This document shows, one piece after another, positions 20,365-31,858 of a DNA stretch of 33,663 bases. The first letter of the stretch is position 1. Each line of letters begins with the position of its first letter. Below the pieces are notes generated by a model, which ran no database searches, was not told where the DNA came from, and saw only the letters and a list, made by a program, of their open reading frames with translations. A program made the translations under genes and the position numbers. This DNA comes from Prasinococcaceae sp. CCMP 1430 (lineage: Eukaryota; Plantae; Prasinodermophyta). Location: NCBI GenBank assembly GCA_013416795.1, contig RQSC01000030.1, forward strand, positions 281,158 to 314,820. The letters are read 5' to 3'.

Positions 20365-21750
20365 GCTCGCCGGCGGCTGGTGTGCGCGCGCGCCGTCGCG
20401 GGCTCCCCAGGCAGCGGAAGCGGCGGCGCCAGCGCCAGCGCCAGTAGCGAGCTGGGCTTCGATGCGCCCCCCGCCGCGCCGCGCGCGCGTCGTCCAGGTT
20501 CTTTTGTCGCGCGCCCCGGCGCTCTGCAGGGTCTGCCGATGGTGCCACCCTCAGAGGAGCTCATGGGCACGTGCTTCAAGGCCGCCCGCAAGCAGGGGCC
20601 GAAGCGTGGCATGAAGAGCGCGCTGGCGCGCAACCGCGAGCAGTACACGCGGCAGATGGACACCCTCACGGTTGAGTTCACGACGCGGCTGCGCACCCTC
20701 TGCGAGGGTTTCGTTCGCCCCGACCGCTTGCACGCGTTTGAGCGCGAGCTGGTGCTGCTCACGCTCGGCGAGGGGCGCTACGAGGATGCCATCTCCGGAG
20801 TGGAGAAAGTGCGCAAGAAGATCGTGGATGTGGGCAAGGAGAACACGCGCAAGGTCGCCCGGGCGACGACGCTCGAGGAGATTGAGGACACGCGGGAGGC
20901 GGGCTTCGCGCACGTGCGCAGCGTGTACATGAGCATGGGCTGGGCGGTCGACGAACTCAAGGAGGTCGCGAAGGTGTGCAGGCGCATGCCTGTGGTCGAC
21001 CTCGAGGTGCCGACCCTCGCGCTCGTCGGCGCGCCCAACGTCGGCAAGTCGAGCCTGGTCGCGACTCTCTCCAGTGGCAAGCCCGAGGTCTGCAACTACC
21101 CTTTCACCACCAAGGCGATCTCCATGGGCCACATGTTCATCGACGCCGCCAAGCTCGAGCCCGCGCAGATCACCGACACGCCGGGCCTGCTCGCGCGTCC
21201 GGACGAGGAGCGCAATGACATCGAGGGGCTGGCCATCGCTGCGCTCGAGCACCTGCCGACGGCGGCGCTCTTTGCCTTTGACATGAGTGAGGAGTGCGGC
21301 ACGTCCGTGCAGGACCAGCTCTCGCTCTTCGAGGAGCTGCGGGGCAGGTTTCCGCACAAGCCGTGGATCACAGTGTCCAACAAGGTCGACCTCGACCACG
21401 GCGAGGGCTACGCCGCTGCGATGGCCGGCGCGCGGGCAGAGACCCTCGAACACGTGGAGGCCGCGCTGCGAGTGTCGGTCCTCACGAATGAGGGCATCGA
21501 CGCGCTGCGCGCGCAGGTGCTGGGGGTGCTGACGGAAGCGGCCGCGACGCGCGAGGCGGAGCGCGAGCGCCTCGGCCTCACGAGCGCCGACAGCGGCATC
21601 GGCTTCGGGCCAAGGCCCCACGACCGGGAGGACGGCGATGCGTCGGAGGGCGAGAGCAGCGGTGCGGAGGGCGCGCAGCCGCGCCCTCGAAAGCCGAACC
21701 GGCGGTCGCACGGCCGCGCGGCTGTCAGCGGCAGCGGCGTCCACGGGTAG
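20365..21750 (+). CDS. NOG1/GTPBP4-like GTP-binding protein, short (probably organellar) type; 5' end in the gap
   Basis: G1 GAPNVGKS, G2 NYPFTT, G3 DTPG, G4 NKVD. NOG1 features include LHAFERELV, RRMPVVDLEVPTLALVG and DMSEECG. It lacks the long cytosolic NOG1 C-terminus. Confidence 0.92.
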   Translation, partial: ARRRLVCARAVAGSPGSGSGGASASASSELGFDAPPAAPRARRPGSFVARPGALQGLPMVPPSEELMGTCFKAARKQGPKRGMKSALARNREQYTRQMDTLTVEFTTRLRTLCEGFVRPDRLHAFERELVLLTLGEGRYEDAISGVEKVRKKIVDVGKENTRKVARATTLEEIEDTREAGFAHVRSVYMSMGWAVDELKEVAKVCRRMPVVDLEVPTLALVGAPNVGKSSLVATLSSGKPEVCNYPFTTKAISMGHMFIDAAKLEPAQITDTPGLLARPDEERNDIEGLAIAALEHLPTAALFAFDMSEECGTSVQDQLSLFEELRGRFPHKPWITVSNKVDLDHGEGYAAAMAGARAETLEHVEAALRVSVLTNEGIDALRAQVLGVLTEAAATREAERERLGLTSADSGIGFGPRPHDREDGDASEGESSGAEGAQPRPRKPNRRSHGRAAVSGSGVHG

Positions 21751-21991
21751 GCCGCGCTGCGAGCGCTGCCCATGTTGTACATGTACATGTCGTGCGAAGT
21801 TTCCGTTGGGAGTATCTGCTGTTTATGGGAATGCGCGGGAGCGCTGCGCTGCTTGTACGAATTCGTTGCTCGAGCCGCGGGCATGGGGAGCGCAGGACGC
21901 TGATTGGGAACCCCCCTCATCCCCCCCCCCCCCCTTCTCCTCGGCTCCCCGTTCGCTTGCGTTCCGTCCCGCCTGGGCGAGAGGCCCGGCG

Positions 21992-22966
21992 CTATCGCCT
22001 CGCCTTGCCCCCGGCGGACTTCGCGCGCGTGAATGCCACCCCCGCCGCGAGCCCGAGCCCGATGCTCGCAAGGTTCTGCCACGTGGTGGGCGTGTTGAAG
22101 AGCAAGATGCCCAGAATCGAGGTCGGAATCTTGTTGAGGCTCCCGACGAGCGAGTACGTGGTCGCGATCGTCGACTGGAGGAACCACAGGCTGGCCAGCG
22201 AAATGGCGAAGCCAACGCAGCCGCTCATGGCCGCCGCCATGAGGAACGAGGTCGATCGCAGCTGGGGCGCGTCGAGGACGCCCGGCAGCTCGCCAAAGTA
22301 CACCATGAGCGCCAGGATGAACGGCGTGCACAGCAGGTTGTTGAAGTACACCATGCTGAACTGCGAGAGCTCACCCGAGCGCGTGAGAGGCTTCACGGCG
22401 TCCATCGTGCGGCGCAGGTAGAGCGCGTACGCGGCCGTGAAGATGCAGTTGGTGAACTGCCACGCGTAGCCCTCCAGGTTGAACTCGAGATCGGTCAAGC
22501 CCGAGCACAGCCCCGAAATGAATATGAGCACCAGACACCACCACACGCCAGCGCTCGGGCGCCGGCCGAAGAACCACATGTCGCCGCACACCACGAAGAT
22601 GTTGGAGAAGTTTTTGAGGACGGTGACCATCGGCACGCTCAGGTGCTTGATGGAGAAGAAGCCCGTCATGATCATCCCCACGAAGATCGCGTTCGCCGGC
22701 AGCCACAGCTTGGTGATCGGCAGGGTGAGCGGCTCGAGCTTGACGATGCCCACCAGCGAGCACGCGCAGACGAGCAGCACGCTCATGAGCGTCTGCGATA
22801 GCAGCAGCGAGTTGGTGAAGTGAAAGTCGAAGCCCGTGAGCACGTACTTGTTCATGAGCACCATGGTCGCGCTCGCCGCGCAGTAGCAGGCGCCGGCGAC
22901 GAGGGTCTGGGTGCCGCCCGGCGCCGGCGCCGGCGCATGGTGGGAGGGCAGCACCGATCCCTTCAT
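21992..22966 (-). CDS. Nucleotide-sugar transporter, GDP-mannose transporter (GONST1/VRG4)-like; may start further upstream (ORF open to 23599)
   Basis: About 10 hydrophobic segments. YCAASATMVLMNKYVL, LSVPMVTVLKNFSNI, YALYLR, MVYFNNLL and TTYSLVGSLNKIP, the G(A/S)LNK motif of GDP-sugar transporters. Confidence 0.9.
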   Translation of the reverse strand: MKGSVLPSHHAPAPAPGGTQTLVAGACYCAASATMVLMNKYVLTGFDFHFTNSLLLSQTLMSVLLVCACSLVGIVKLEPLTLPITKLWLPANAIFVGMIMTGFFSIKHLSVPMVTVLKNFSNIFVVCGDMWFFGRRPSAGVWWCLVLIFISGLCSGLTDLEFNLEGYAWQFTNCIFTAAYALYLRRTMDAVKPLTRSGELSQFSMVYFNNLLCTPFILALMVYFGELPGVLDAPQLRSTSFLMAAAMSGCVGFAISLASLWFLQSTIATTYSLVGSLNKIPTSILGILLFNTPTTWQNLASIGLGLAAGVAFTRAKSAGGKARR

Positions 22967-23599
22967 CCCCGCCTCGCCGTCACCCGCGAGCAGCGGCGCC
23001 TCCTCGACCTCCGCCGCGCTCCCCACCGCCCTGCGCCCCCCCCGCGAGGCGTCCTGGCCCGCGCCTCCCAGCGGCAGGGCGCCGCGGGCCGCCACGCTTG
23101 CCGAGGCCACCCTCCTCCCTCTTGCGCCGCGCTGCTCCCCTCGGCCCCCGCGCGCGCACTGACGCCCTGGCGCGCGCGCGCTCGCACGCGCGCCCAGCTC
23201 CACCACCCGCTGCTCTGAGGCGCCAACGACGAATTGCAGCGCCTCCGCCGAAGTGGGCGGCGGCTTGGGCGGCTTGGGAGGCACGACGACGGGCTCGACT
23301 TTCACGCGCGGCGGACGGGGCGGGCGTTTGCCGCTCCTCCGCCTAGGCGTCGCACCATCGCCGTCGTCGGCGCTGCGGCGCGCGCGGGCGCCCGACCTCG
23401 ACCCAGAACGCGCCGCCGATGGCTTGGCTGTGAAGGGGCTGACACCCGTCGCCTGCAGCAGGAGGTCCAGCCCCCCGAGCGCGTCCATATCCATCTCGTC
23501 GACGGTNCGCGCGCGCGCGGGCGCGCCGCGGTCGCAGGGAGCGCGCGCAGCAACAGCGAGCGCCCGCGCGCGCTGCCAGCGGCGGGAGATGACGATCAT
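22967..23599 (-). CDS. In-frame upstream segment (MDMDALGGLDLLLQA...KVEPVVVPPKPPKPP), either an N-terminal extension or a separate gene
   Basis: Stop-free and in frame with the transporter, but the Pro/Arg/Lys-rich content is unlike a transporter leader. It contains a GTGCGC donor-like site near 23160 and an N at 23507. Confidence 0.3.
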
Positions 23600-24824: not shown

Positions 24825-27800
24825 TCAGTCGCGCGCTACGCGGCGTCGACGTGCGCAGTGCATCGGCCTAGGACGCGCGCGCGTCATGGGGCGGCGGTCG
24901 CGAGCGCAAGCGCGCCGCGCGCCGTGCCTTTGTGCGAAGACGCGGGACGTGAACGTGTCCAGGATGCGCCCCGTTTGCTGCCCGGAGCCACGCACGCGGA
25001 ACGCGCGCCCGGCGAGCGATTCGGGAAAGACTTGTACCACCGGGATTGAGCCGCGCACGCCCTTGAGCCGCAGCTTTCCCACCGGCTGGGCCTCGATGCT
25101 GCTCCCTACCGACGTACGCATTCCGTGGTGGCTACGCAGCCACCAGGGCACTTGGTCTTCGCAGCGCTCCATAGCGCTGGAGCCGCCTGTCGCCTCGAGC
25201 ATCTCCGAAACTTGGATATCGCCTTCAGCGATGGAGGCGTCGGAGAGCGTGCGCGCGGCCGCCTTCGGGAACGATCGCCACGACTGAAACGCGCGTTTCC
25301 TGAGTGCATCGTCGGCAGACGCTGCCGCGTCGTCGCTCCCGTGAGGCCCGTTGCCGTTGTTGGCGCGCTCCCCCGTCTCATCTGAGGTGGCGTGACCGCC
25401 CGAGCCCCCCTCCTCAGTGTCAGGGAGTGCATCGTCGGCAGCCGCTGCCGCGTCGTCGCTCCTGTGAGGCCCGTTGCCGTCGTCGCTCCTGTGCGCCCCG
25501 TTGCCGTTGTTGGCGCGCTCCCCCGTCTCGTTTGAGGTGGGGTGACCGCCCGAGCCCCCCTCCTGAGAGTGAGGGGCGTCGCGCACGACGATATCTGCCT
25601 TGCCGTCTTCGTCTGCGGCGTCTGCTATGCCGTCTGCTATGCCGTCTGCTAGCGGCGACGATGCCGCCGGGGTGGACTCGTCGTCGTCGGTCGATGCCAT
25701 GGCTGACTCGGCGTCCTGCTCGTCGCGGAGGGCCCGCTCCCAGGTGTAGCGCGCGCAGAGCGTCTGCCCGCCCGCCGCGCGGTTTGCAATGCGCGCTGCT
25801 CGGTTGATCACCGGCCCCTTCCACTGCGCGAAGCTCGTGGTGGCGTCTGGATACACCTCGGATGGCACACCCGTGCAGATGCCGCAGGCGACGCGCAGGC
25901 CGCGGAACACGACGCCCCTGGCGCAGCTCGGCAATGGGTCCGCGCCTTCCGCGCTTGGCGCGCTCGCGCCCTCCCCGTCGGTTCCTGGATCTGTCTCGAA
26001 TTCGGTCTCGGTGGCGGTGCCACTTCCGACCGTCCGGTTGAGCCGCTCCTCGTCGTCGTCGGTGTCGGCACTGGACCGTCCGTCGCCGCCAGTGGTTGCG
26101 ATGTCGCTCCTCGAGCCGCGCTCGTCTCCCTCGGGGATGGTCACACACACCGTGCCGCCCGCGTCGCTCCTCTGTCGCGCTGCTGGGGGAGGGAAGCTCC
26201 CGCCCTGGCGCTGGGCGCTCGCAAGGGTTTCTGTCCCAGTGGCGACGAGCTCGATGCCGCCGTCCTCGCCACTCTCGCGGTCGCCCCCCCACTTGCCCCG
26301 CGCCCGCAGCGGGTTCGGCAGGGCGCCCAGCCCGAGGTCCGGCACCCAGCGCGGGAGAATGTGCCCCTCGCGCTGACGGTACGAGCGCGAAGGCGCGAGA
26401 GTGCTGCTGCTCACGCTTCGGTCCGACGTTGAGCCCTCCGTCTGACCGGAGTTGCGCAGCACCGCGCTCGACAACGCAATCCCCGAGAGCGCGCCGTCGC
26501 CGCGCCGTCCGGTGGTGGCTGCGATGCCATCTCTGCGCGCGGGCGGCACGAAGGCGGCACGCGGCGCGAGCGACATTTCTGCCGCCTCGTTGAGGGCGAG
26601 CAGCTCCTTGGGCCAGTCCACGTCCATCGCACGCTCCTGCAGGTCGCAGCAAAAGCGCACCCCGTCCGCCGGAGCGCGGAACGCGATCACGTAGTTGCCG
26701 TGGAGGGCATCCACGGATTCCGCCGGATAGCCCGCGTGTTCCGTCCACAGCACGTGCAGGAAGTCAAGCAATCGCTCGAGCGCCAATGTCGTGGCCTCCC
26801 TGTCCATGCGCAGGAGGTGCAACAAATCAGGCACGTTGAGGAAGACGAGGGTGACTTCGCCGTCCACCGCCCCGAGCGGCGGGAGCGTGCCTTCGGAGGG
26901 CGTGCGCGGCACCGCCGGCGCGTCGAAGAAGCCCGGCTGCGTCTGCGCAACCGTCCTGTGCGCGCGGGGTGCGGGTTCGCGAATTCGTTAGCAGTGCGGT
27001 CGGCGGGCCCCATCCATGCGCGGCGCAGCAGAGACGAGCCCTTCCTGCCATCGTCGCGGTGCGTTCGCACCGCGATCGGCGCACATCATCGGCGCGGGCG
27101 CGGGGCGCGAGGGCGACTGCACCGCGGCGCGACTGGCCCGCGCCCTCCCAGCCAGGGCCGGGCGTCCCACGTACCTGAGCCCCTGCATGTGGGGGATGCG
27201 ACCCCTGAGGCGATCGTTTAGGAGCATGATGAGCGGGATGGGCGCGTCCGCGTCGTGGGCCGGCGTCGTGCCCGAGCCCCTGATGAGCACGTGCTCGCCC
27301 ATGTGGATGGCCATGAAGCTCGGGGCGGCGTGCACGGAATTGTCGCCTCGGCGCTCGCTGCTGGCCCTGGACAGCGCGTTTTGCACGTACTCGGCGTTGA
27401 GCCCGTTGAAAGCCTGGCCGGAGAGCAGGATGGTGCCGCCGGACTTGGCGGCATCGCCCACCGCGCGAGCGACGCGGTACTCTTGGCCGCTGTAGCGAAA
27501 GCGCCCCGAGTGCTTGTCGCGGCTGCGCTGCATGACGCCGGTGTGGATGCCGATGCGCACGCGCAGGCCGCGCCACAGCAGGGGGGGCTTCGCAAGCGAG
27601 GCGGCGCGCCGGGCGTCCTCCCCTCCCTTGCTGCGCGCGGACGGGAGGAAGGCCCTCAAGGTGCGCAGCGGCCCGCCGACGTCGGTGCCGGCCTCCGAGG
27701 AGGACACCACTGACGACGAGGTCGAGCGCTCCGAGGAGGGCGCGGCTGCCTGCGGCGTGGCCACACCGTTGGCGTGCAGCCGCTCGCCGCCAGAGAGCGC

Positions 27801-30800
27801 GCCGTCGCGGTGGCCGTTCACTCCCGCGTGCGCGGCGCCCCGCGGCGTGCCGTCGGCGTCCTGCAGCGCCTGCCCGCCTTCGTCGACGACTGGCGCGATT
27901 GGCACGCTCGGGTGCCGCGCGCTCGCGCCGCTGGCGAGACCGCTGCTGCCAGATCCACCCCCGTCGCCGTGGCGGTGGTAGATTGGCCGCAGCCACCCGT
28001 CCATGGCGCCGAGCAGCCCATCGCTCCACTCCACCTCGAGGAGAGCGTCCTGCACCTCGAGCGCCCACAGCACGGCGTCGGCGCTCGTGTGGAAGGCCAC
28101 GACGAAGGCGTCGCCCTCGGTGTTGGATTCGTAGCCGCTGTGCTTGCTGATGAGCTGCCGCATGACCTGGTGGTGCTGCCTGAGGGCCGCGTTCATCGCG
28201 ACCGGGTCGGCCTCCCACAGGTCCGTCGACTTCTCGATGTCGGTCGTCGCGAGCGTGAGCTCGTAGCCCGCCTCTCCGTCGGCGCCCGGCGGGGCGTTGT
28301 ACATGCGGCGCCACATCGCCAGGAAGAGGTGCGGCGTCATTCGATACGACCGCCACATGAAGCAGCCGAAGCACACGAGCGCTGCCGCCGCGAGCAGGAG
28401 GACGCCGGACACAACGATGGCGGCGATCTCCCACGCCGTGATCGAGTTGCCCTCTTCTTCCAGCGGGCAGCAGAAGGGCTCGATCACGGTCATGATGCGC
28501 ATCGCGCTGTTCAGGGCGTCCGACACGAAGATGTCGGGCGGGCGAGGTATCAGGCCCAACGACGAGTTGAGCGCCGGCAAGACGGCCACGCCCGCCGGTG
28601 CGCAGAACAGGGCGTTGCCCGCCGGCTCGGGCGACAGCACCCTATCCTCCTCGTTCGACGAGTCAGCCGCACACTGCGCCGGGCTGCCGTAGGTGGCGTT
28701 GACCGTCGGGGCGCTGCATAGGTCGTCGTTGCGAAGCCCCGCGTCGGTCGCCGACCCCGCGAGCGTGAACACGAACGACTGTCGAACATCGACGAGGCGC
28801 ACGGTGTTGTCGTCCGTCACCGCGAGGTATTCCAGGATGGGGTCTCCATCCCTGTTTACAGCACAGCACCCCGAGTCCGGGTCGCACAAGCACTCGTCCG
28901 TGTCGTTCGGCGGCAGGACGAGCGGAAAGGAGTCCATCGCGCCGGGGTTGCTAAACCTGGCGAGCGGGCCGAAGCTGCGTGGCCGCCACGGTCGGTCGCC
29001 GGGCGATCGATTGGCCGAGCGTTGCGTTCGCGGCACGAGGGCGCGGTCCGGCCGCGCGCGCGAGGGGGGCGGCTCGTCAGAGCGCGGCGCGGTCAGGGTG
29101 CGGCTCGGCGCCCGAATGGCGCGGCGCGAACGGCGCGGCAAGCGGGTGAGTCGCCGGAGGTGGGGCGGGCGCACGCGGCGTCCGAAGGCGCGCGCGTACC
29201 CGTCCGTCACGGCGCTCGAGCCAGACGTGAACGCCCCGACCAGGGTGTTCGTTATGCACGAGACGGTCTCTATCAACCGCACGACGTTGTTGCCCTGGTC
29301 GGTGACGTACATGATGGCGAAGGGGCGATCCACGTCGATGCTGCCGTCGTCCGCGTCTTCGGCGTCGTTGCTGTTGAAAATCTTGGACATCCTGAGCCCC
29401 GTCGGGTACGCGAACAGTATGTCGTTCTCGTCGGGCGTCCCGGAGATGGAGTCCCTGAAGCCGAAGACCGTGCCCAGGTAGGTGCTCACGTTCCCGCGCA
29501 CGTCCGAGTCGGAGGCGTTCCCCCCGAGGTTGACGCGCCTGATGCTCGAGCCCGCCCTGTCGGCGACGAAGAGCTGCGCGTTGCCTTCGCAATCGGGGTC
29601 GCAGCAGTCCGTGATGCACTGGTTGGGCTGGTAGCACTGCGTTGACGCGCTGCCGGCCTCGATGTACGCCAGCCCGGCGGGCGCCATGAAGCGCGCGTCC
29701 TCGGGGGGGCCGTCGATGTTGCCCTGTATGCCGCTCCCCGCCAGCACGCTCACGTTCAGCTGGTCCGCCGCGGCGTCGGCGAGCGTCAGCCCGGCCGAGA
29801 GGGCCGCGTCCGTCAGCGTCGCCTGGATGATGCAGAATCCCGCTGAGTTGGAGATGTACAGCTCGGTGAATTCGTCGTTGGCCACCATGTCACCGATGCT
29901 GATCGCCGTGCACTGCACGCGCTTGAGCGGCTGGTCGCAGGACAGCTGCTTCGGGCTGATGAGCTCCTCGAGCTCCCCCACCGCCCCCGCCGCCCGTCGC
30001 TTGATGGAGGGCAGCACCACCCCGTGGGCCGCGTCGGTCGCGCAAACGCCGTTGTCCGCGATGAGCATGGCGCCGACGCCGCCGAAGTAGCCGACCGGCG
30101 GCGCGGCGTCGTTGCTGCCGATGATCTCGGACTCGCCTGACTGGGTGGCGCCGCCGTCGACCACCGTGCCGTTCGACAGGTGCAGGATGGCGCCCGGGGT
30201 GGTCAGGCCCGTGGAGGCGTTCCCGAGCCTCACATCTTCGACGTTGCAGCCGCTCGTGGCATTCGTGGAGCCGTCCGTGGGGAGCGAGTACACGAAGAAG
30301 CCGCCCTGCAGGTCGGGCTCGGTGGGCGCCCTGCAGTTGAGGCTCGTGGGCGCTTGCGCGAGGCTGCGAAAGGGCGCCACGTAGCCCGCCGTGATGGTCG
30401 TGTTGCCCGGCAGCACGGCCTCCGCAGGGAGGGCGCCCGCCGCTCTCAGCTGGAACTGCCGATCGCACACCTGGCCCACCTGCGCCGCCGTGAGCGAGCC
30501 GAGGGGGTCTGCGCACGTCTCGTCCTCCGAAGAGGACGAGGACTGGCCGCCGACGAGCGCGCCGAAGAGCCCCTCGGCGAAGTCCGCCGCCGGCGCCGCC
30601 GCCGCCGGCGACGCCGTCGGGGACGCCTGGGCGTCTGCCTCCGACGGCGGCTGGGGCGCCTCGCCGCCCCCCCCTTGCCCCCCGTCGGCCCCCGACGTCG
30701 CGGCCTCCTTCAGCTGGTTGTACTGCACGCACGAGTGCGACACCTTCACCTCGAGGACGCGCGAGGACAGGGAGCAGTCGTTGGCGTTGGGGCTCTTGTC

Positions 30801-31726
30801 GACCAGCGTGAAGCCGTCGTCGGTGGTCTCGCCGGAGTAGCACGCCTCGGGGACCGTGCGCCCGCTCGAGGCGTTCACCAGGTCGTTGCATCGCAGCGTG
30901 AGGTCTTTGTTGAGCTGCTCGAGCGTGCGCGTCTCGTTCCAGACCGTTATGGTGTCCAGCACGCCCGTGTAGAAGCCGTCGCCCGCCACCAGCTCGCTCG
31001 CGAAGCCCAGCACCGAGCAGTCGGGCGACGCCACGCGTCCGGGGCACTTCGCGCGGGCGGTGACGTTGCCGTCGAGGTAGTACGTGAGGTGCTGCCCGTC
31101 GTACGTCCAGGCCATGAAGTGCCACACGTTGCCGACGACCGTCCCGTTGCCGAGCAGCGTCTGGGTGACCAGGGAGGTATCGTTGAACTCGCCGCACGTG
31201 CAGTTGTTGACGCCCGCGGGCAGGCCGTTCCAGCACGTGGCGGGGTCGTCCTCCCGCACGATTTGGAAGTTGCTCGTCTGCACGCCCTCCAGCACCCCCA
31301 CGTCGAACGCCAGCGTCGCGTTGACCGCGTCGCCGTCGTGCAGCACGCCGCGCGTGGCCACGATCTGCGGCGTCACGGACTGCCTCATGATGGTCCACGC
31401 GGCGATCGTGAAGTTCTGCGAGGACTCCGTCTGCGGCGCGGGCCCGCAGTTGGCGAACTCGGCGTTCTGCCCGTTGAAGTAGACGGAGCCGTCCTCGATG
31501 AGGATGCCCGTCAGGTTGCACTGCGCGGGGTTCGGTATGTCGCCGCCGCCGGAGGACGGCTGCAGGAGCAGCGGGAACTCGTCGTACGCGTCCGGCGCGT
31601 CCTGGTATCCCCCATCTTCGTCCTCCTGCTCCTGGGGCTGGGGCTGGGCGGCCGGGAGGGGCTGGGGCTGGGCGGCCGCGAGGCGGAAGGCGAGCGCGAG
31701 CGCCGCCGCGCACGCCGCCGCCGCGC
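24825..31726 (-). CDS. Single-pass receptor class III nucleotidyl cyclase: signal peptide, LamG/pentraxin-like domain, NHL repeats, TM, two cyclase domains; exons (gap)-29200, 28974-27175, 26955-24825
   Basis: Signal-like AAAACAAALALAFRLAAAQ. LamG: FTIAAW, WHFMAWTYDGQHLTYYLDG, FYTGVLDTITVWNETRT. NHL: DGPPEDARFMAPAGLA, LFVADRAGSSIRRV, FAYPTGL, YVTDQGNNVVR, DG|FGPLARFSNP. TM IAAIVVSGVLLLAAAALVCFGCFMW. C1 TDIEKSTDLW..EGDAFVVAF..GLRVRIGIHTG. C2 GLRVACGICTG..GPVINRAARIA..GQTL..LKG. Introns 29199-28975 and 27174-26956 have consensus ends. The start codon is probably in the gap. Confidence 0.9.
25302..25571 (-). repeat. In-frame tandem duplication (123-nt period; second unit has an extra 24 nt) inside the cyclase C2 exon
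   Basis: GAGTGCATCGTCGGCAG starts at 25302 and 25425. Protein: EGGSGGHPTSNETGERANNGNGAHRSDDGNGPHRSDDAAAAADDALP / EGGSGGHATSDETGERANNGNGPHGSDDAAASADDAL. Confidence 0.92.
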
Positions 31727-31858
31727 NNNNNNNNNNNNNNNNNNNNNNNNNNNNNNNNNNNNNNNNNNNNNNNNNNNNNNNNNNNNNNNNNNNNNNNNNN
31801 NNNNNNNNNNNNNNNNNNNNNNNNNNNNNNNNNNNNNNNNNNNNNNNNNNNNNNNNNN
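31727..31858. other. Assembly gap (N run) at the 5' end of the cyclase gene
   Basis: Run of N read directly; the right edge is accurate to about 1 nt. Confidence 0.97.

Follow-up and report, generated by a model that had tools for sequence, protein, structure and literature searches.

A putative single-pass receptor cyclase with complementary C1 and C2 domains in a prasinodermophyte alga and its green-algal relatives

Gene model and receptor architecture

The window analysed in this work is a 33,663-nucleotide (nt) stretch of contig RQSC01000030.1 from the green alga Prasinococcaceae sp. CCMP 1430, with a G+C content of ∼70%, and all coordinates given below refer to it. Its minus strand carries, from ∼31388 to 24825, a single gene of receptor type whose product is predicted to combine an ectodomain, one transmembrane (TM) helix and two class III nucleotide cyclase domains, named here C1 and C2. 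A preliminary description of this DNA had proposed that the two domains are degenerate in complementary ways and build one active site within the same chain. The complementarity, the single membrane pass and the contrast with homodimeric receptor cyclases drawn there are all borne out by our analysis, although the intron between C1 and C2, a glutamate at the purine-binding position and the abundance of such proteins in green algae had been overlooked.

In a plain reading, the gene appears as two minus-strand open reading frames (ORFs) in the same frame, 26988..31388 (1466 amino acids, aa) and 24825..26912. The only in-frame stop between them, a TAA at 26990-26988, lies inside an in-frame intron of 219 nt (26956..27174, minus strand) with GTACGT...CACAG ends. 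There is no ATG upstream of C2, for which the called start is a GTG. In addition, a transcriptome-derived protein of Picocystis salinarum (P0112) is uninterrupted across the position of the C1-C2 junction in BLASTP comparisons. Exon 1 at its end and exon 2 at its start both align with residue 935 of this protein, the Picocystis sequence ...KLR / TAKSLSPSFFEAP pairing with the exon 1 end ...GLR (which reads ...MQGL(R)) and with the exon 2 start RTVAQTQPGFFDAP. Taken together, the clean GT-AG ends, the lack of an ATG before C2 and the bridging by the Picocystis protein argue for one gene with an intron. C1 and C2 are predicted to be two cyclase domains of one polypeptide, the transcript that covers the junction being that of the Picocystis ortholog and not of the window organism. 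In the searches reported here, the exon pieces of the window gene were used as separate queries.

The window protein and its Picocystis ortholog are collinear in BLASTP over a LamG domain, an NHL propeller, the TM helix, C1, a linker and C2. The ectodomain (28443..31388, minus strand) starts with a LamG/ConA-like lectin domain (aa 75-158, nt 31166-30915, minus strand; Pfam Laminin_G_3, E 3.2e-9), followed by an NHL-type β-propeller region (∼aa 418-975, minus strand) that was delimited by collinearity with the Picocystis protein. In the latter, Pfam recognises Laminin_G_3, NHL repeats (E 5e-21) and Guanylate_cyc; in exon 1 of the window gene, it finds Laminin_G_3 (aa 75-158) and Guanylate_cyc (aa 1044-1113), and in exon 2 nothing. 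A word search with the ectodomain gave no match, which reflects a limit of sensitivity since the Picocystis ortholog was later reached by a full HMMER search with C2 and direct BLASTP. The TM helix (28359..28433, minus strand; aa 986-1010, WEIAAIVVSGVLLLAAAALVCFGCF) is the sole Kyte-Doolittle segment above threshold in both exons and aligns with the TM segments of P0112 and of a second relative, P0111, so that the resolved part of the protein has the single hydrophobic segment expected of a single-pass receptor. C1 begins ∼30 aa after the TM helix, with no long helix in between. At the other end, a C-terminal tail and the stop codon (24825..24995, minus strand) close the gene, the stop being identical in the corresponding protein of a wild strain (P0108).

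The cyclase domains and their relatives

C1 and C2 differ strongly in the ease with which they are recognised. The N-terminal half of C1 (β1 to α3; 27999..28262, minus strand) reaches 43.2 bits with Pfam PF00211 (cut-off 21.9), an E value of 1e-20 with 1FX4/1FX2 and 115.5 bits with a clade hidden Markov model (HMM) that was built from 22 compact domains of relatives. The C-terminal half (27175..27584, minus strand) gives 14.5 bits alone with Pfam and 46.9 bits with the clade HMM. It includes the HMGEH β7-β8 hairpin, is supported by the GRESAG4 alignment and is matched to the Picocystis protein by BLASTP through ...KLR. Between the two halves lies an arm insert (27585..27998, minus strand) of ∼138 aa, of low complexity and unmatched by the HMM; across the family, inserts at this site vary from 15 to 480 aa. 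As a whole, C1 matches Trypanosoma brucei GRESAG4.3 and GRESAG4.1 (1FX4, 1FX2; E 1e-20) in two blocks around the ∼140-aa insert, the 1FX4 match covering both halves (E 8e-21), and enters the clade HMM with an E value of 2e-50.

The preliminary description had proposed to align both domains to Pfam Guanylate_cyc, which succeeds for C1 but not for C2: no Pfam match to C2 appeared even at E values up to 10 on three sub-pieces, and its similarity to the GRESAG4 chains is weak at the sequence level (E 0.003). In contrast, the clade HMM detects C2 with an E value of 5.3e-32, as three collinear segments that are split by inserts of ∼220 and ∼200 aa. After the C1-C2 linker (26871..26955, minus strand; motif QPGFFDAP), segment 1 (β1 to α3; 26574..26870, minus strand) scores 41.7 bits with a predicted local distance difference test (pLDDT) above 90 in AlphaFold (AF2). 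It is followed by insert 1 (25914..26573, minus strand; ∼220 aa), which is disordered, with a pLDDT below 50 and no HMM match. Segment 2 (β4 to α4; 25704..25913, minus strand) scores 43.5 bits and is delimited by the 1FX4 alignment and the family profile. Insert 2 (25107..25703, minus strand) comprises ∼200 aa that include an acidic/Gly-rich repeat and has a pLDDT below 50 except for one predicted helix at ∼55-63, while segment 3 (β7-β8; 24996..25106, minus strand) scores 14.7 bits, has a pLDDT above 90 and finishes with a LAGRAF end motif. In the AlphaFold model of C2, computed from an alignment of single-domain sequences (A3), the core has a pLDDT above 90 and the inserts lie below 50; superposed on 1FX2 (T. 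brucei GRESAG4.1) with VIA, it gives a Z score of 24.3 and a root mean square deviation (rmsd) of 3.2 Å over 212 of 235 residues. According to this model, C2 is a complete cyclase homology fold overlooked by Pfam. An earlier alignment of C2 with full-length tandem proteins (A2) was dropped as chimeric, because it paired C2 segment 1 with the C1 domains of the relatives.

Canonical residue positions were assigned in both domains by alignment to T. brucei GRESAG4 and to the clade HMM, C2 residues being numbered in the frame from nt 26957. All motifs on which the preliminary description had relied are found on the minus strand at the places it gave, namely TDIE, EGD and EYRVARAVG in C1 and LNVP, GNY and GPVINRAARIA in C2. 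C1 keeps both metal-binding aspartates, D1050 (nt 28241-28239; TTDIEKST from aa 1048) and D1093 (nt 28112-28110; TEGDAF from aa 1090), as well as the β4 arginine, R1278 (nt 27557-27555). Its purine lysine position is Asn1089, the second purine position (Asp) is Arg1298 and the β7 lysine position is an isoleucine, while the transition-state asparagine and arginine positions are occupied by Arg1305 and Ala1309 within EYRVARAVG (from aa 1303, nt 27482-27456). The reverse holds in C2. The two metal aspartates are replaced by Asn41 (VTLVFLNVPD from aa 35) and by Gly87 or Asn88 (HGNYVIAF from aa 86), and the β4 arginine position is Ala357, but the transition-state pair Asn385 (nt 25805-25803) and Arg389 (nt 25793-25791) is kept in GPVINRAARIA (from aa 381), together with the β7-β8 lysine, K632 (nt 25064-25062). 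The proposed resemblance to the C1/C2 pair of transmembrane adenylyl cyclases (tmACs) is thus upheld and extends to the β4 arginine of C1 and the β7-β8 lysine of C2, the same pattern recurring in 55 relatives.

At the purine-binding positions, C2 has Glu80 in place of the lysine (nt 26720-26718) and Gln378 at the second position. Guanylyl cyclases carry a small residue or a cysteine there, and Gln378 is typical of neither the guanylyl nor the adenylyl class. The placement of Glu80 follows from the ungapped register G-Y-P-A-E versus G-Y-E-V-K and agrees with orthologs (GYECE in Picocystis, GYECE in Mesostigma and GYVVE in Volvox). Asp83, to which a 3-aa gap right after Gly-Tyr in the HMMER alignment would point, was rejected in its favour. 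C2 also has Phe376 (nt 25832-25830) instead of an arginine that is retained by the Picocystis ortholog and by 53 of 55 C2 domains of the family; the wild-strain protein has the same phenylalanine.

A full HMMER search with C2 returned 693 proteins at E ≤ 0.001, of which 253 fetched relatives (cluster representatives) were classified with the clade HMM, a domain being called C1-like when both aspartates and the arginine are kept and the Asn/Arg pair is lost. At least 55 of the 253 show a C1-like followed by a C2-like domain, in every case on one chain, and none shows the reverse order, which indicates that the complementary pattern is not due to chance. These proteins come from Mesostigma viride (many paralogs), Picocystis, Chlamydomonas sp. 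UWO241, Volvox, Gonium and C. eustigma, Fabomonas being the one non-green source. A protein of Edaphochlamys (P0009) has the C1-C2 residues as well but is placed outside the 55 by the classifier. Chlamydomonas and Volvox have been reported to encode ∼60 cyclase domains each (PMC4620153). Conservation also extends to positions that played no part in the classification: in C2, Lys194 (50/55) and Arg139 (53/55), and in C1, Thr62, Glu63 and Gly64 (each in more than 50 of the 55). The C2 purine position is a glutamate in 37 and a glutamine in 10 of the 55. Of 28 relatives in which the linker was measured, 25 have one of 25-37 aa, and the motif (S/T)P(S/G)FF(D/E)AP is part of it. In contrast, ectodomains vary, with LamG-NHL in the window protein, weak periplasmic-binding-like matches in Mesostigma and Edaphochlamys, and leucine-rich repeats (LRR) in P0039. 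P0039 and P0249 are LRR-type relatives whose catalytic residues are divided between domains.

Some members of the wider set have unusual arrangements. P0132 of Chlamydomonas sp. UWO241 carries C1-C2-C1-C2 on one protein. P0001 and P0002 are metagenome proteins with four or five tandem cyclase domains, mostly intact in the former and mostly degenerate in the latter; although they are the top matches (E ∼1e-95), they were rejected as orthologs because their scores sum over 4-5 mostly intact domains. In the Fabomonas tropica protein (P0140), the C2 domain of the C1-C2 pair carries Gln/Asp as purine residues and clusters with the algal C2-type domains, so that the duplication may be older than the green lineage or have spread by transfer.

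The phylogeny that the preliminary description had called for was inferred from 45 and 73 domains as quick trees with moderate support. It places the window C1 within a clade of 21 C1-type rows (support 97-98) and separates all 26 C2-type rows from the rest by a branch (92-94), the sister of the window C2 being that of Picocystis; both window domains are GRESAG4/CYR1-like. When the 10 trait columns are dropped, the C1-type rows all fall on one side of a branch (84), and so do the C2-type rows (94). In the same trees, the intact tandem domains of Hemistasia, Capsaspora and others pair within each protein. These groupings are consistent with an origin of the C1- and C2-type domains of green algae in one old tandem duplication, and the diversity of the ectodomains would fit one such duplication followed by ectodomain swapping.

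The same gene is present with 98% nucleotide identity on a Tara Oceans scaffold (L001), which allows a comparison with a wild strain. In the cyclase cores, 7 of 1334 nt are substituted (5 synonymously and 2 non-synonymously), versus 35 of 1869 nt in the inserts and intron (Fisher p 8e-4), a ∼3.6-fold lower divergence of the cores; in C1, the arm insert diverges by 2.0% versus 0.3% for the core, and the C1-C2 intron by 2.7%. All indels are in frame and outside the cores. They include a 123-nt (41-codon) in-frame stretch of the acidic/Gly-rich repeat of C2 insert 2 (25319-25441), which is deleted in L001 and makes the repeat differ in copy number between the strains, and a 15-nt in-frame difference in the ectodomain near 30617.

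Proposed mechanism and alternative readings

We consider it probable, at roughly 65%, that the product of the window gene is a type I receptor with a single membrane pass and a nucleotide cyclase from the GRESAG4/CYR1-like branch of class III, and that catalysis would be performed by a composite C1:C2 site. Neither domain appears fit to build a canonical site with its own copy, which means that catalysis should need a head-to-tail C1:C2 pair. In such a pair, C1 would contribute the two metal aspartates and the β4 phosphate arginine, and C2 the purine-contacting glutamate, the Asn/Arg transition-state pair and the β7-β8 lysine, so that a single composite active site would be built and a degenerate pocket left over, as is the case in tmAC and in soluble adenylyl cyclase (sAC). 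A ligand on the LamG and NHL ectodomain may shift the C1:C2 interface via the TM helix and the ∼30-aa segment that follows it. In most class III enzymes, an Asn-Arg pair is known to stabilise the transition state, and a glutamate in place of the purine lysine marks guanylyl cyclases (PMC4215837). The latter suggests GTP as substrate and cGMP as product, a tentative assignment of low confidence because the second determinant is a glutamine and the conserved arginine is replaced by Phe376.

Several observations weigh against this interpretation. Catalysis is predicted here for all family members from sequence alone, and the cyclase Ma1120 is active with an alanine in place of the asparagine (PMC4215837); calling a domain dead by its sequence is therefore unsafe, and such calls have to be read as predictions. 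The window C2 is more derived than its relatives, with a phenylalanine for Arg139, a tryptophan for Tyr142 and an alanine at the β4 position, and could be impaired. The lower divergence of the cores is not matched by a significant contrast in non-synonymous versus synonymous changes between cores and inserts (p 0.2). A cluster look-up of the wild-strain protein for a transcript spanning the junction returned metagenome ORFs only. Finally, for the tandem homolog P0171 (alignment A1), an AlphaFold model in which both domains and the linker are confident (predicted template modelling score, pTM, 0.65) fails to superpose on sAC or AC9 when both domains are taken together (TMt 0.25-0.31, rmsd ∼20 Å) and yields one-domain matches only in VIA.

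How the two domains meet is a separate question, as the sequence fits pairing in cis and in trans alike. A linker that is short and constrained in length speaks for pairing inside the same chain, in which case a monomer may be able to signal, as put forward in the preliminary description. Alternatively, C1 of one chain may pair with C2 of another, with two sites per dimer and ligand-driven dimerisation as the switch, as proposed for trypanosome receptor cyclases; monomers would then not signal. Single-pass receptors commonly work as dimers, and long helices that precede a cyclase domain form coiled-coil dimers in other cyclases. The homolog P0171 carries such a helix of 48 residues (H73-120) before C1, and its model lacks the sAC-like cis packing. 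However, the window protein has only its ∼30 aa between membrane and C1, free of any long helix. Most of the family also has a short, conserved linker of constant length versus a 30-fold variation of other loops, which fits a cis tether. We regard this arrangement in trans as unlikely on balance, though it deserves to be kept in mind.

Two further explanations would remove the composite site altogether. If the window copy made no cyclic nucleotide, its domains could serve as a scaffold or a ligand-binding module, and the loss of Arg139 (kept in 53 of 55 relatives), the unusual Glu/Gln purine residues, the large disordered inserts in both domains and the failure of Pfam to detect C2 would all be in keeping with that fate. 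Yet the six residues needed for a single site are all present (two aspartates and the arginine in C1; the asparagine, arginine and lysine in C2), relatives with similar inserts retain the same residues, and the cores have accumulated ∼3.6-fold less change than the inserts with 5 synonymous against 2 non-synonymous substitutions, so that a pseudo-enzyme seems improbable. Even harder to sustain is an error of the gene model, in which the TAA at 26990-26988 would be a real stop and C1 and C2 would be separate proteins forming a true heterodimer. Apart from the in-frame stop itself, this view could invoke the two ORFs that prokaryote-style gene callers give on metagenome contigs. It runs against the GTG start without any preceding ATG, the clean intron boundaries, the residue-by-residue match of the Picocystis transcript protein through the junction and the presence of both domains on one chain in 55 of 55 relatives, and we judge it highly improbable.

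With a composite site as the preferred interpretation, the predicted working principle is one shared with tmAC, sAC and soluble guanylyl cyclase (sGC), while family membership in any of them fails. As predicted for the window protein, tmACs (1CJK, 6R4P, 7PDD) have two class III domains on one chain with one active site and a degenerate pocket, their C1 supplying the Asp pair and β4 Arg and their C2 the Asn/Arg pair and β7 Lys. However, they have 12 TM helices and no ectodomain versus one TM helix and an ectodomain here, their C2 purine residues are Lys/Asp instead of Glu/Gln, and no tmAC chain matched the window domains in a sequence search at E values up to 1. With its one TM segment and both domains grouping with GRESAG4/CYR1-like sequences, the protein does not belong to the animal tmAC family (ADCY1-9). 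Likewise, sAC (ADCY10; 4CLF and others) carries C1 and C2 on a single chain. In sAC they pair within that chain and the degenerate site is a regulatory bicarbonate pocket, but the enzyme is soluble, of class IIIb type and has a longer linker than the algal protein. The sGC α/β enzyme (3UVJ, 6JT2) has a composite site made of two unlike class III domains, as predicted for the window protein, with a purine glutamate; it is, however, a class IIIa enzyme that consists of two separate polypeptides and is equipped with an H-NOX sensor, whereas the window protein should be one chain.

The closest solved structures for both window domains are those of T. brucei GRESAG4.1/4.3 (1FX2, 1FX4), and these receptors have the same topology, in which one TM helix connects a large ectodomain to the cyclase part in the cytosol. 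The trypanosome enzymes nevertheless have one intact catalytic domain and are obligate homodimers, whereas the window protein has two complementary tandem domains and a LamG and NHL ectodomain. As its two domains are both incomplete, it is not a trypanosomatid receptor-type cyclase (ESAG4/GRESAG4), and the contrast with homodimeric receptor cyclases made in the preliminary description is confirmed. The nearest counterpart is the uncharacterised Picocystis protein (MMETSP transcript, 1293 aa), which has the architecture LamG - NHL propeller - TM - C1 - linker - C2, is collinear with the window protein at 25-49% identity and has the same complementary residues; it differs in being compact without long inserts, in keeping the C2 Arg139 and in having a leucine as second purine residue. 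Since both window domains are closest to GRESAG4 and not to tmAC, the composite-site design appears to have arisen independently of animal tmAC and sAC.

A broader and rather doubtful generalisation is that green algae (Prasinodermophyta, Chlorophyta and, from the streptophytes, Mesostigma) inherited a whole family of single-pass receptor guanylyl cyclases with a composite C1:C2 site independent of tmAC/sAC and with swapped ectodomains (LamG-NHL, periplasmic-binding-like, LRR). In this family, the C1 helix A-[KR]-A-[VI]-x-D-A-x-x-G-G, which takes the place of N-x-x-x-R, may be the sign of a pseudo-site under regulation, much like the pocket that binds forskolin in tmAC or bicarbonate in sAC. 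The literature searched, with most subscription journals outside its reach, yielded no description of such algal tandem cyclases, which agrees with their being an under-described system, as first suggested. Composite sites are known from tmAC, sAC and sGC; here, they would occur on single-pass receptors of the trypanosome/fungal-type branch, conserved over the deepest divergences within the green lineage, and would offer a natural replicate for the question why one catalytic site was traded for a regulatory pocket. The family also provides a large set of candidate cGMP/cAMP receptors in algae, where cyclic-nucleotide signalling is barely charted. For annotation, a C2 domain missed by Pfam hides the tandem nature of these cyclases, with the consequence that such proteins are filed as single-domain cyclases.

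Other features of the locus

The ectodomain probably contains another in-frame intron, at 29199-28957. This candidate (28957..29199, minus strand; 243 nt, GTACGC...CCAG), proposed from reading the sequence, has a donor similar to that of the C1-C2 intron, is free of stops and translates as Arg/Pro-rich text in a plain ORF reading. Upstream of the first methionine (31388), the window has an in-frame stop and Arg/Ser/Pro-rich text (31389-31858), and an assembly gap spans 31727-31858, and the gene model is incomplete at its 5′ end; the signal peptide expected of a type I protein was not found in this 5′ part. The genes next to the cyclase gene encode a TPT-family sugar-nucleotide transporter and a NOG1 GTPase (20401-23599). 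Their order is the same on the Tara Oceans scaffold (L001:8729-11535), which indicates that the locus is stable in wild populations.

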